A stretch of DNA of 64,000 bases from the sequence record PQ182779.1, one strand, 5' to 3'. Made by a program: the position numbers and the translations under genes. Shown here in pieces: positions 25,924-29,087 of this stretch (within the stretch, counting starts at the first letter, position 1; the number at the start of each line of letters is the position of its first letter). Below the pieces are notes generated by a model. That model saw only the letters and a list, made by a program, of their open reading frames with translations, had not been told where the DNA came from and did no database searches.

Positions 25924-26544
25924 ATGGCAAGAGCAAAACTATTGATCATTGAAGGACTCGATGGCGCAGGGAAAACAGAAGCAGTCTCATTACTCCGACA
26001 GGCGTTGAAAGAACGTGGTGAATCTGTCGTGGTGTTTCGTGAGCCTGGCGGCAATGTCCCTGCAGAAAAAATCCGCGAATTAACACAGTCGTCAGATCGC
26101 CCGTCTTCCCCCGCTGCTCGTGCTCTGTTGTTCGTCTCGGCACGTAAAGAGATCTTCGACAGTCAAGTTAACTTTGCTCTGGAGGGTGGACATACCGTTA
26201 TTCTTGACCGCTCATGGCCTTCGACTTTCGCCTATAGCCCGAAAGAAGAATGGGATTGGATTTTCAATCTCCACGAAGGATTAGGACTCTTCGATCACCA
26301 CCACTCAATTTTTTTCTTGGATATCGATTACGCCACCCACGTTGCTCGGTTAGGGCGTCGCAAAAAAGATGTCATCGAAGAAGAATTGGCGACCCAATTT
26401 GATTTCTACCGTGACCGTTACTTAACGGTTTTGAATGACCTTGCGCCAGAGGCTAACGGAAAGGTCGCTCTCATTGATGCCACCCGTCCGTTGTCCGAGG
26501 TCTTTCTTCAACTGATGGCAAGTTATGATGAGGTCTATCAATGA
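25924..26544 (+). CDS. tmk: thymidylate (dTMP) kinase
   Basis: IIEGLDGAGKT P-loop, FREPGG and VILDRSWPST. Confidence 0.92.
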   Translation: MARAKLLIIEGLDGAGKTEAVSLLRQALKERGESVVVFREPGGNVPAEKIRELTQSSDRPSSPAARALLFVSARKEIFDSQVNFALEGGHTVILDRSWPSTFAYSPKEEWDWIFNLHEGLGLFDHHHSIFFLDIDYATHVARLGRRKKDVIEEELATQFDFYRDRYLTVLNDLAPEANGKVALIDATRPLSEVFLQLMASYDEVYQ

Positions 26545-27137
26545 CATTAAATGAACTCCTGTCACTCCCTGACGATACCGTCCTGGGTAATTACGTTGAT
26601 AAGGATGATATCTCGCTTGCGGATCGCGCGCATCTTTTTGCGCCCGCTATTCACCCAGAAACCGCCACCGTGAAAGACCTGCGGGAATACCTGGACAGTC
26701 ATCCCGATGACGATAACAAGACAATATGGTTAGAAATGGAAATCGCACCTTTACCGGAACAAGGAAAAGAAGAGCCTGTTAATGACCAAACAGATAAGAC
26801 GGTACCCGGTATTCATCCAGAAGTGATTGGTGCGATCGCTAAACCGGATAAATACGAAGTCAGGTCACGGCGTTTGGTTGGTGCTATGTTCGCAATGGTA
26901 CTGGCCTTCACTATTTTGATCTTCACCTCAGTAGTGGCCGTGGTGTGTATCGATAGAAAAGAACTCCCCTCGGCGACGTTAGCAGGGATCATTATCTTAC
27001 CGACGATGATGGTGACGTGGTATTACATGGGCATCATTAACCGAGAGCGCCGAGATATCCTTTCGGCAGTGGTAGGCGATAAGATCAACAGCAGTGTAGT
27101 AGCAGACGTTATCACCGCGTTACGTAGCAGACGATAA
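26541..27137 (+). CDS. two-TM membrane protein, holin candidate
   Basis: Hydrophobic segments LVGAMFAMVLAFTILIFTSVVAVVCI and LAGIIILPTMMVTWYYMGII, a basic C-terminus, and adjacency to the spanin genes. Confidence 0.5.
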   Translation: MTLNELLSLPDDTVLGNYVDKDDISLADRAHLFAPAIHPETATVKDLREYLDSHPDDDNKTIWLEMEIAPLPEQGKEEPVNDQTDKTVPGIHPEVIGAIAKPDKYEVRSRRLVGAMFAMVLAFTILIFTSVVAVVCIDRKELPSATLAGIIILPTMMVTWYYMGIINRERRDILSAVVGDKINSSVVADVITALRSRR

Positions 27138-27143
27138 AATATA

Positions 27144-27172
27144 AAAGGTAGAGGGTTTGACCCTCTACCTTT
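27144..27172. terminator. bidirectional hairpin H8
   Basis: AAAGGTAGAGGG-TTTGA-CCCTCTACCTTT, with A-rich and T-rich flanks between convergent genes. Confidence 0.8.
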
Positions 27173-27175
27173 ATT

Positions 27176-27775
27176 TTATTTTGTCTTACTATCAAGTTGG
27201 GCGGCGTTAAGGTAAACTTCCACGAGTTCCTGGTATTTTACAAACGCCCCTTTATACTGAACGATGACCTGCTGCGCAGCGTTTAATCGCACGGCGCATT
27301 GATCTGCTCTAAAGGCTTCCCCTTTAAGAAATTGCACATTCTCAGCTGGAAGTTTGGCGTAATAGGTTCCATCACTTCCTCCCGAACTTCCGGGAGTTTG
27401 ACTTCCGGTACCTTGAGCGTTACCGATGTGTTTTTGGTCGGTACGTACTCTTTCGACGCGCAACCACACATCACCAATACCATCAAGCTTAGACTGAGTA
27501 TTTTTAATCGCTTTTTGTTGTTCATCGAATTTACCATTGATTGAAGACAAGTTATTATCCAATTCGTTTTGTAACACGCCCATGTGCTCATCAAGCGACT
27601 GTTGCAAATTCTTTTGGATGGTTTGCGTCATTTGGTTCGTGACGTCGGCGATTGTTTCAGTGATCTTTTTCTGTGCGTATTCCCCGGCTTTAAATACACC
27701 GTAGATAAAGAGCAAAATAGAGAGAATGACCAGAAGCCACCTAACTAACTTGTTGTTGAAAAATGAAGTCCACAT
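27176..27775 (-). CDS. Rz: Rz-like inner-membrane spanin (i-spanin), 199 aa
   Basis: N-terminal TM (LVRWLLVILSILLFIYGVF), coiled coil, a G/S linker, and a C-terminal helix EAFRADQCAVRLNAAQ. Contains a nested lipoprotein ORF. Confidence 0.8.
   Translation of the reverse strand: MWTSFFNNKLVRWLLVILSILLFIYGVFKAGEYAQKKITETIADVTNQMTQTIQKNLQQSLDEHMGVLQNELDNNLSSINGKFDEQQKAIKNTQSKLDGIGDVWLRVERVRTDQKHIGNAQGTGSQTPGSSGGSDGTYYAKLPAENVQFLKGEAFRADQCAVRLNAAQQVIVQYKGAFVKYQELVEVYLNAAQLDSKTK
27283..27525 (-). CDS. Rz1: Rz1-like outer-membrane lipoprotein spanin (o-spanin), nested in Rz, 80 aa
   Basis: MNNKKRLK-ILSLSLMVLV-MCG/C signal peptide with the lipobox Cys at 27460-27462. Pro-rich mature part with two further Cys. 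Lies fully inside the i-spanin gene in another frame. Confidence 0.8.
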   Translation of the reverse strand: MNNKKRLKILSLSLMVLVMCGCASKEYVPTKNTSVTLKVPEVKLPEVREEVMEPITPNFQLRMCNFLKGKPLEQINAPCD

Positions 27776-27777
27776 AC

Positions 27778-29022
27778 TCAGGCCACCTTTTTAATCAAGA
27801 GAAACCGCGCTTCAGAAGAGAACGTCGGTCTATACCCGTAACGTTGGTTCTGAACCAATTGACGTTCATTCATCGGAATAGTTTCGTAAAACCAACGACT
27901 GACCAACGAATGCGGGAGACGAAGTGCATAGAACCCATCTTGTTTCCACAAGGTATACTCCGCCAGATACCCGTTACCGATCTGTGCCGGAAGGTCAGGT
28001 AAAGTCTCGCCCGGTGAGAGATAAGTCCCGTCAATCAATGTCCGTTTCAAACTGAGGTATTCTTTCTCGAGGTTCACGCTGTCGATCACTACCAGGAAAG
28101 AATAAACCGAAGTCATAAACGCTTTGATCACTGCGTCAGTGATGAACTGATTTGCAACCACCTGTTCTGTTTCATTCTCATCTTTAGAAAGCGGAATGTC
28201 ACTGTAGTCCAAATATTGGTGCGTTTCAAAAAAGTGGTTGATCAGGTTGATATTCTGCATATGGACTTGGATACGGGTTTCCCCAGTAACAGAGACTTCT
28301 TTATCGAGAAGATACAGTTTCCCCGCTACTACCAGACCAACGGTTTTCCCGGTCAGCGCCACCGGAGAACGTAAGTAAAACCCTTTAGCTAATGGTAACG
28401 CTTCCCCACCGCCCTGAATCATACTCGCCGAAATTGGGAAAGTCTCTACTTTCCCAATTGAACTAAAATCCAGAATCCCTACACGTAAGTCGTTAAACTT
28501 GGACGCAAACTTACCAGCGTGGTTCAGTGTAATCCCTTCGCCATCAATCGGCCATGCTCGGAAACAGAGTCCGTTGACTGTCCAAAGAGATTGGTCAACA
28601 ATGGTACTGTAATCGGTAATCCCGTCCCGTTGCACCAGAAGGTCAATACGTTGATCTGGTAACAGGTTTTCGTCGGTACTGAAATTAGCGTTAGTCCCTT
28701 TAAAGGTGAACTTGTACGCCATTGCATTCAGAAAGCGAACGTAACTGTCACCGCGTTGACCACGAGGGTCGTCTTCCACCAAAGTCAGACCAGATGCTAA
28801 TTCAAGGTATTGATTTAACGTGGCGACAGAATCGCGCACCGACACCGGGAGACTATAGAGATCCAGCCACCCGTTCTTCTCGTTAGTCGCGTCGAAGAGG
28901 TAAACCAGAACATTGCTGTACAAAGTGAAGATGGTAATCAGTCGTACTTCACCCAGTGCCTTTTCTTCCCAATCATTAAAACTGCCTTTCGTTCGTGTTT
29001 GTGCCTGAATAAGCTGATACAT
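27778..29022 (-). CDS. virion structural protein, 414 aa
   Basis: An AAAGGA RBS precedes ATG 29022 (MYQLIQAQ), so the track start 29076 is too long. Divergent from the tail fibre genes. Confidence 0.6.
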   Translation of the reverse strand: MYQLIQAQTRTKGSFNDWEEKALGEVRLITIFTLYSNVLVYLFDATNEKNGWLDLYSLPVSVRDSVATLNQYLELASGLTLVEDDPRGQRGDSYVRFLNAMAYKFTFKGTNANFSTDENLLPDQRIDLLVQRDGITDYSTIVDQSLWTVNGLCFRAWPIDGEGITLNHAGKFASKFNDLRVGILDFSSIGKVETFPISASMIQGGGEALPLAKGFYLRSPVALTGKTVGLVVAGKLYLLDKEVSVTGETRIQVHMQNINLINHFFETHQYLDYSDIPLSKDENETEQVVANQFITDAVIKAFMTSVYSFLVVIDSVNLEKEYLSLKRTLIDGTYLSPGETLPDLPAQIGNGYLAEYTLWKQDGFYALRLPHSLVSRWFYETIPMNERQLVQNQRYGYRPTFSSEARFLLIKKVA

Positions 29023-29087
29023 GTCCGGTCCTTTTTGATGAGTATTGGTATGTTGATCCATCGGCCGATGGTACATTGAGGATAATC

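Follow-up and report, generated by a model that had tools for sequence, protein, structure and literature searches.

The embedded genes of a predicted two-component spanin in the Klebsiella jumbo phage vB_kp_MJ359

Described spanin systems and the locus in MJ359

The embedded architecture of two-component spanins is said to have been described by Summer in 2007 and is textbook knowledge. In phage lambda, the gene of the outer-membrane spanin Rz1 (o-spanin) lies wholly inside the gene of the inner-membrane spanin Rz (i-spanin), in its +1 frame, and starts at about 0.4 of the length (L) of the outer gene. We report a locus of this kind in the Klebsiella jumbo phage vB_kp_MJ359 (MJ359). The window analysed is a stretch of 64,000 nucleotides (nt), bases 124001-188000 of the 300,816 bp record PQ182779.1, with window position 1 at base 124001. 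An inner gene, unannotated in this record, lies within an outer gene that GenBank already lists as a spanin, and judging from its sequence the locus very probably encodes a two-component spanin in the embedded lambda Rz/Rz1-type arrangement. It is a spanin pair of known architecture in a Klebsiella jumbo phage and ordinary of its kind, and the concept of spanin action is unchanged by the finding. The gap lies in the annotation of the inner gene, and the main value of this work is a correct annotation: a predicted lysis gene of 80 amino acids (aa) is missing from MJ359 and from all related Klebsiella jumbo-phage records. For Klebsiella jumbo phages as therapy or as a source of lysis proteins, part of the lysis gene set is thus completed.

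The 801 bases around the locus are 100% identical to PQ182779.1, whose annotation includes a nuclear shell protein, the PhuZ tubulin and split RNA polymerase subunits. Therefore, MJ359 is a nucleus-forming jumbo phage with a Gram-negative host. A preliminary description of the window had concluded on a Gram-negative host from the locus, in agreement with the database records of the phage and of its near-identical relatives, which give Klebsiella pneumoniae. Nine further Klebsiella pneumoniae jumbo-phage records are 97.8-99.8% identical across the 801-base region, and the phages FBKp24 and Centimanus match it at 85.5% with partial coverage only. The relatives compared were Siatvirus-like phages, FBKp24 and Centimanus, six Moabitevirus genomes and three metagenome contigs (L016, L017 and L018) recovered via the i-spanin. 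Their i-spanins are 39-68% identical to that of the window, and the set used for the inner frame comprised nine distinct sequences from about six lineages. The public sequencing runs used were metagenomic DNA or probably DNA, and the contigs inform on presence and micro-diversity of the locus.

An orthologous pair was already recognised in 2019 in Serratia phage Moabite, whose i-spanin and o-spanin are mentioned in the genome announcement (Price et al. 2019, PMC6639629). This pair (CPT_Moabite_142/143, QDB71172/QDB71173) is annotated as i-spanin and o-spanin and shares its synteny with the window: a gp130-like virion gene, the i-spanin gene with an embedded +1 o-spanin gene, a terminator, and a convergent membrane protein gene with tmk. 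The o-spanins are 62% identical and the i-spanins 41%, the N-terminal halves of the latter only 24%. The position of the lipobox, three Cys residues and the C-terminal motifs are alike, whereas the lipobox itself is canonical in Moabite (A-M-S-G-C) and V-M-C-G-C in the window, and both host genus and phage genus differ. In the Moabite o-spanin (L004:3215-3454) Leu replaces the Pro of a C-terminal I-N-A-P-C that is found in all other members, and the Moabite i-spanin has Tyr after the invariant Cys-Ala-Val, where the Klebsiella clade has Arg. The two replacements may be linked through the shared DNA.

The inner gene is annotated in neither PQ182779.1 nor any other Klebsiella-phage record, where the outer gene alone is given, as the preliminary description had expected of automated annotation. 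In a collection of 5.8 billion proteins, the inner protein has one called homologue only, the Moabite o-spanin, which was curated by hand. Such omissions are frequent, the o-spanin being unannotated in 196 of 528 two-component systems (Kongari et al., PMC6139136). In phiKZ, too, the outer spanin gene carried the label 'Rz-like spanin', and the o-spanin had been missed or given a wrong start (Manohar et al. 2026, PMC12894885). The phiKZ pair gp141/gp141.1 and the window pair are both two-component spanins of nucleus-forming jumbo phages, the latter by prediction. However, the phiKZ genes overlap and are contiguous with the genes for holin gp142, regulator gp143 and endolysin gp144, whereas the window pair is embedded and stands outside a cassette. 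The function of gp141/gp141.1 was shown by complementation of lambda Rz-am Rz1-am (PMC12894885), and lambda Rz/Rz1 complementation was likewise done with the T4 spanins (PMC6139136); for both, the assay was pRE transactivation in a lambda Rz-am Rz1-am lysogen with Mg2+.

The lambda and window pairs also agree in the build of the i-spanin, that of the window as predicted (transmembrane domain, helix, linker and helix), in a small Pro-bearing o-spanin lipoprotein with the motif [VI]MQP..P-D/N-W/F-Q, and in periplasmic Cys residues in both proteins. In contrast, the mature lambda Rz1 has 40 aa, 25% Pro and one Cys, and the mature window o-spanin 59 aa, 12% Pro and two Cys. The window i-spanin has one Cys where lambda Rz has two, the i-spanins are without detectable similarity, and the lambda pair belongs to an S-R-Rz/Rz1 cassette, unlike that of the window.

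The closest link of the window pair into the curated Rz family is Acinetobacter phage vB_AbaP_Alexa (MT375042.1, orf016). Its Rz passes PF03245 (Phage_lysis, Rz) with 39.8 bits, at a gathering threshold of 25.4 bits, and a stretch of 47 residues has 55% identity with the window i-spanin, in the linker and distal helix of the latter. An unannotated +1 open reading frame (ORF) embedded in the gene of this 'Rz lysis protein' matches the window o-spanin (tblastn, 36.5% identity, E 6e-5). Alexa differs from MJ359 in being a podophage of 40 kb whose Rz gene stands in a classical holin-lysozyme-Rz cassette. Its i-spanin is unrelated to that of the window in the N-terminal two thirds, and its o-spanin is without the two C-terminal Cys. 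The embedded lipoprotein ORF of Alexa (L019:1516-1716) has the lipobox M-S-G-C. Another unannotated embedded +1 lipoprotein ORF, with the lipobox M-L-G-C, is found in Erwinia phage PhiEaH1 (L020:1507-1737), inside a 'hypothetical protein' gene placed, like the window pair, behind a virion gene.

Purifying selection on both reading frames

Of the 600 nt of the outer gene, the inner gene takes up nt 251-493, in the +1 frame. When synonymous codons of the outer gene were permuted, the 80-codon stretch was free of stop codons in 13% of the trials and held an ORF with a signal peptidase II-like signal in 2.4%. This single-sequence evidence against chance is only moderate and too weak to decide; the comparative evidence is decisive. 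Conservation of both frames in relatives had been named beforehand as a check on the nested gene. In all relatives examined, the +1 frame is kept open, free of frequent stops, and begins with Met, basic residues, a hydrophobic stretch and a lipobox, with the same C-terminal motif at the other end. The +2 frame is closed in every one of them.

Synonymous sites of the outer gene give the clearest signal. Between MJ359 and FBKp24, outer-frame third positions have an identity of 0.35 ahead of the overlap, 0.90 in the overlap and 0.18 beyond it, and the fraction of conserved residues with degenerate codons that use the same codon is 0.30, 0.94 and 0.20 in the same three regions (58/62 against 18/69; Fisher p = 3e-16). 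With third positions binned over seven lineages, identity is about 0.33 at first, climbs to 0.92 through the overlap after ATG 27525 and is back at background (0.39) in the bin beginning with the inner stop at 27283. We also held both outer proteins of a pair fixed and redrew synonymous codons from local codon usage. Under this null model the +1-frame identity expected from outer-frame constraint is 0.26-0.33, whereas 0.59-0.84 was observed (z = 7.8-10.6), and both sequences were stop-free by chance in 0.2-1.7% of the draws per pair.

Within the overlap, the third position of the inner frame is the most variable one, and of the two proteins the inner is the better conserved (85% against 68%, and 62% against 41%). 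Ten near-identical phages share one o-spanin sequence (100% identity) but differ in the i-spanin, and the i-spanin substitutions I117V and G152R, which fall in the overlap, are silent in the inner frame. Divergent metagenomic contigs of at least 80% likeness align only from 27287/27288 to about 27477-27545. These matches break off one codon inside the o-spanin stop, so that, at the nucleotide level, likeness to distant relatives is cut off sharply at the inner stop codon. No other DNA of the spanin locus is as conserved as the overlap. Both reading frames are under purifying selection and the nested gene pair is real; with its step of synonymous-site conservation at the inner stop codon, the overlap is an unusually clean case of dual-frame selection.

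Anatomy, start codon and remote homology of the pair

The i-spanin has a single hydrophobic segment, at its N-terminus (residues 8-34; Kyte-Doolittle 19-residue mean up to 2.45), and none elsewhere; it is a predicted inner-membrane protein with one N-terminal transmembrane domain. Its only Cys, Cys160, is invariant among the aligned relatives. An AlphaFold2 (AF2) model from an 8-sequence alignment has helices at residues 9-98 and 144-192 and leaves residues 108-137 unstructured. The predicted local distance difference test (pLDDT) score is best at the membrane anchor (70-77) and below 50 for residues 114-134. Since confidence is low, the model was used for secondary structure only. Against Pfam coiled-coil families the i-spanin gave sub-threshold matches only. 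The DNA of its Gly/Ser-rich linker (27365-27454) doubles as the Pro/Glu/Val-rich middle of the o-spanin. A G+C-rich 6-bp hairpin (CTCCCG...CGGGAG, 27379-27396), which a scanner reads as terminator-like on the plus strand, antisense to the spanin genes, lies in this part of the overlap. The hairpin falls on a tandem P-E-V-K/R repeat of the o-spanin, where the i-spanin reads G-S-S-G-G, and it probably results from this repeat.

Read from ATG 27525, which is codon 24 of a TTG-started ORF of 103 aa at 27283-27594 in the +1 frame of the outer gene, the inner product has 80 aa and starts MNNKKRLKILSLSLMVLVMCGC. These coordinates and sequences, as first described, all hold. The lipobox was sought with a PROSITE-PS51257-style pattern, and the core of the signal peptide by hydropathy. 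The pattern matches with Cys22 as the lipidated residue (VMCG|C), and Gly-Cys is invariant across a 10-sequence o-spanin alignment in which lambda Rz1 is included. Cys20 was rejected as the lipid site, as the pattern fails there with Met at -1; it is also unconserved, being Ser in every other lineage except L018 (Tyr). The prediction of a signal peptide of type II followed by a 59-aa lipoprotein with two extra Cys thus stands, with Cys64 and Cys79 kept throughout the jumbo-phage clade. The label 'Pro-rich' applies to the lipoprotein only moderately, with 7 Pro in the mature chain and about half the proportion found in lambda Rz1. The residue at +2 is Ala, from which sorting to the outer membrane is predicted; it is Ala in 10 of 11 sequences and Glu in one metagenome relative.

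The lipoprotein gene lies wholly inside a gene for a predicted membrane helix, a linker and a Cys-containing helix, as the preliminary description had it. With a start at 0.42 L, it agrees with the modal inner-gene start of embedded spanins (0.4-0.5 L), of which 182 systems were found among 677 phages (Kongari et al. 2018, PMC6139136). At least one periplasmic Cys for intermolecular disulfides is present in 507 of 528 two-component systems, among which the combination 1 + 2 is common (PMC6139136); Cys160 of the i-spanin with Cys64 and Cys79 of the o-spanin gives this combination.

At the level of families, the i-spanin matches the PHROG families phrog_37839 (function unknown; 4e-39) and, weakly, phrog_2466 ('Rz-like spanin'; 1e-5), and the o-spanin has a weak match to phrog_3198 ('Rz-like spanin'; 6e-4). 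Neither the window i-spanin nor that of Moabite matches PF03245 at E <= 1, the relative in PhiEaH1 scores 14.1 bits, below the gathering threshold, and none of eight o-spanins matches PF06085 (Rz1 lipoprotein; gathering threshold 27.9 bits) at E <= 10. The link of the i-spanin to PF03245 is transitive only, via the Rz of Alexa. The o-spanin profile aligns with lambda Rz1 in hhalign (probability 90.9%, E 1e-6), in part via the signal peptide, and the two have in common the Gly-Cys lipobox and the motif [VI]M[EQ]P..P[ND][FW]Q. By these comparisons, the pair is a remote relative of Rz/Rz1. Two other spanin types were considered and set aside. A unimolecular spanin of the T1 gp11 type combines a lipoprotein signal with a C-terminal transmembrane domain, and the 80-aa product has the hydrophobic segment of its signal peptide only. 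A phiKZ-type spanin would not agree with the absence of gp141 similarity, the embedded arrangement and the absence of a holin, regulator and endolysin behind the pair.

The place of the inner start, and whether the inner ORF is translated at all, can be weighed on the same comparisons. A spanin pair whose o-spanin begins further upstream, at ATG 27537 (MVNSM..., 84 aa) or at the TTG at 27594 (103 aa), is quite unlikely. ATG 27537 is in frame, four codons ahead, and occurs also in L018. In FBKp24 and Centimanus, however, the equivalent codon is Thr with a stop just ahead of it, and the inner frame opens just four codons before the equivalent of ATG 27525; in the Moabite group, L016 and L017 the upstream sequence is unrelated, and the length and sequence of the extension vary in other lineages. 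A start at 27594 would in addition place 44 residues, several of them charged, before the lipobox. Only the Met equivalent to 27525 is common to all lineages, with a signal peptide of 20-21 residues. As the extension is unconserved and 27537 is replaced by Thr in FBKp24, the shared start is 27525, and the choice of this ATG over the TTG in the preliminary description is supported. No convincing Shine-Dalgarno pairing was found ahead of the o-spanin start in any lineage when energies were set against background, and neither ATG, 27525 or 27537, has a good sequence of this type; the energies being those of the background, translation signals neither support nor exclude the start. The want of a clear Shine-Dalgarno sequence, the fact that no gene caller reports the ORF and the 13% of stop-free permutations would also fit a non-coding shadow, kept open and conserved by constraint on the outer protein or by an RNA or DNA element. 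Such a shadow is nevertheless extremely improbable: the identity in the +1 frame exceeds the expectation from outer constraint by 8-11 standard deviations, substitutions in the overlap follow the periodicity of the inner frame, and the signal peptide and lipobox are retained despite sequence change. Furthermore, the suppression of synonymous change stops at the inner stop codon, and amino-acid changes of the outer frame among close strains are silent in the inner one.

Two real genes could still serve another end than lysis, for example a superinfection-exclusion or receptor-masking lipoprotein (T5 Llp or Cor type) next to an unrelated membrane protein, and several observations weigh against a spanin pair. 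It stands outside a lysis cassette, among virion and nucleotide-metabolism genes. The 64-kb window holds no endolysin or holin gene and the annotation of the 300-kb record lists neither; the gp144-like transglycosylase kpMJ359_062 of that record lies about 112 kb from the pair. Neither protein reaches any Pfam or NCBIfam spanin model; the i-spanin profile finds nothing in lambda Rz (hhalign, probability 0.3%), nor the i-spanin in phiKZ gp141 (BLASTP E 36), and its AF2 model has a mean pLDDT of 57. MJ359 has an unusual Cys at -2 of the lipobox, where relatives bear the canonical A-M-S-G, and the inner gene ends at 0.82 L, not at the modal 0.9-1.0 L and earlier than about 70% of embedded pairs (PMC6139136). 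Ahead of ATG 27525, Shine-Dalgarno pairing is weak (-2.8 kcal/mol, no better than at 43% of gene positions), which is a caveat for expression level and mechanism, not for coding. The spanin role itself is a prediction for the whole family, the Moabite assignment included. However, a non-spanin pair is very improbable in view of the remote homology to an Rz/embedded-Rz1 pair in a canonical holin-lysozyme-Rz cassette and to lambda Rz1. A type II membrane protein of helix, linker and helix with a nested lipoprotein is the defining anatomy of spanins, co-conservation is strongest in both C-terminal parts, as expected of interacting partners, and spanins outside cassettes are known, e.g. T4 pseT.3/pseT.2 (PMC6139136). 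The embedded lambda Rz/Rz1 architecture put forward in the preliminary description is thus supported by dual-frame purifying selection, the demonstrated features of membrane anchor, signal peptide and lipobox, and remote Rz/Rz1 homology.

If the pair is an embedded spanin, it may act as follows. The N-terminal helix of the i-spanin would hold the protein in the inner membrane, from which a rod of helix, linker and helix would reach into the periplasm. Ribosomes would initiate at the internal ATG 27525 in the +1 frame and produce an 80-aa prolipoprotein, to be processed at Cys22 by signal peptidase II and the lipoprotein-modification pathway. The mature o-spanin of 59 aa, with Ala at +2, would be carried by the Lol system to the outer membrane, into its inner leaflet. 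The C-terminal parts of both proteins, co-encoded by the same DNA, would then bind to each other in a complex that spans the periplasm, probably stabilised by disulfides via Cys160 of the i-spanin and Cys64 and Cys79 of the o-spanin. As infection ends and the endolysin clears away the mesh of peptidoglycan, these complexes may collapse and fuse the inner and outer membranes, completing lysis of Klebsiella. For complex formation, disulfides, membrane fusion and timing, we infer from the literature on lambda, T7, T4 and phiKZ.

Genomic neighbourhood and dispersed lysis genes

The coordinates of the locus are collected in Table 1. The stop of the upstream gp130-like gene lies 2 nt ahead of the i-spanin ATG, and the same tight junction is found in all relatives. 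Therefore, the spanins are probably expressed in a late structural transcript, that is, late and together with structural genes. The i-spanin gene ends 4 nt from the hairpin terminator, and in Moabite a terminator is annotated at the equivalent position.

Table 1. Features of the spanin locus of MJ359 in window coordinates
Feature	Position	Strand	Basis or remark
Upstream gene, homologue of phiKZ virion protein gp130	27778..29022	-	BLASTP E 2e-22
i-spanin gene (predicted)	27176..27775	-	199 aa + stop; 'Rz-like spanin' in PQ182779.1
i-spanin membrane anchor, about residues 10-28	27692..27748	-	Hydropathy and AF2 helix
i-spanin Gly/Ser-rich flexible linker, residues 108-137	27365..27454	-	Sequence; AF2 without regular structure
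i-spanin distal helix, residues 144-192	27200..27346	-	Invariant FLKGEA-RADQC-AV motif; Rz-like part
Embedded o-spanin gene (predicted), +1 frame of i-spanin gene	27283..27525	-	80 aa + stop; unannotated in source record
o-spanin signal peptide, residues 1-21	27463..27525	-	Basic n-region K4, K5, R6, K8; hydrophobic core; lipobox V-M-C-G
o-spanin Cys22 codon, predicted lipid-modified first mature residue	27460..27462	-	Lipobox pattern; Gly-Cys invariance
Non-coding shadow extension, TTG 27594 to ATG 27525	27526..27594	-	Unconserved in relatives
Bidirectional hairpin terminator, 13-bp stem, T-runs on both strands	27144..27172	.	Common to spanin gene and convergent gene 26541-27137

The spanin pair lies outside a lysis cassette, a location that is usual, not obligatory, for two-component spanins. 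With no annotated holin or endolysin and a gp144-like gene about 112 kb away, the lysis genes of the clade are dispersed, unlike the contiguous 141-144 cassette of phiKZ, for which function was demonstrated recently (PMC12894885). The gp144-like gene kpMJ359_062 (L022:38558-39238, in PQ182779.1 and outside the window) encodes a protein 31% identical to the catalytic part of the phiKZ endolysin gp144 (E 1e-27). In place of the N-terminal cell-wall-binding domain of gp144, it has an uncharged hydrophobic N-terminus that ends in A-T-A-S and looks like a signal peptide or a signal-anchor-release (SAR) domain. With such an N-terminus, the endolysin may be exported without a canonical holin.

Another gene annotated as 'transglycosylase', kpMJ359_046 (L022:20960-21604, outside the window), was rejected as the endolysin, its product having no significant similarity to phiKZ gp144. 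It adjoins the tail-sheath gene, and the PHROG families that it matches, in their C-terminal parts, are large baseplate-hub and tail families. A virion-associated lysin domain is more probable here than an endolysin.

Convergent with the spanin gene is kpMJ359_177 (26541-27137, plus strand), whose start overlaps the stop of tmk and which encodes a conserved 'hypothetical protein' of 198 aa. The protein has an acidic, soluble N-terminal part of about 108 aa and two hydrophobic helices (at about 109-140 and 148-166), and its WYYMGIINRERRDILSAVVGDKINSS tail is almost invariant. As the authors of the Moabite genome found no holin, it could be the missing holin or pinholin of the clade, which we offer as a weak lead. 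It was rejected as a phiKZ-gp142-like holin for want of sequence similarity to gp142, and a Foldseek search of BFVD with its model returned its own family only. In PhiEaH1 and Goslar the homologue is not adjacent to a spanin.

From these data a scenario can be drawn for the nucleus-forming jumbo phages of Enterobacterales (MJ359, FBKp24, Moabite and PhiEaH1), which we regard as speculative and rather unlikely as a whole. Instead of a contiguous cassette of the phiKZ type, these phages would use an acquired, unrelated embedded spanin of the Rz/Rz1 type, fused transcriptionally to a virion gene, and the other lysis functions would be scattered. The endolysin would be the gp144-like transglycosylase, with a signal or SAR-like N-terminus in exchange for the cell-wall-binding domain, and the gene at 26541-27137 would encode the holin or pinholin.

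The gp130-like ORF upstream of the pair may start at 29076 (432 aa) instead of the GenBank start at 29022 (414 aa); in the comparison with phiKZ gp130, alignment sets in at the start of the shorter form.

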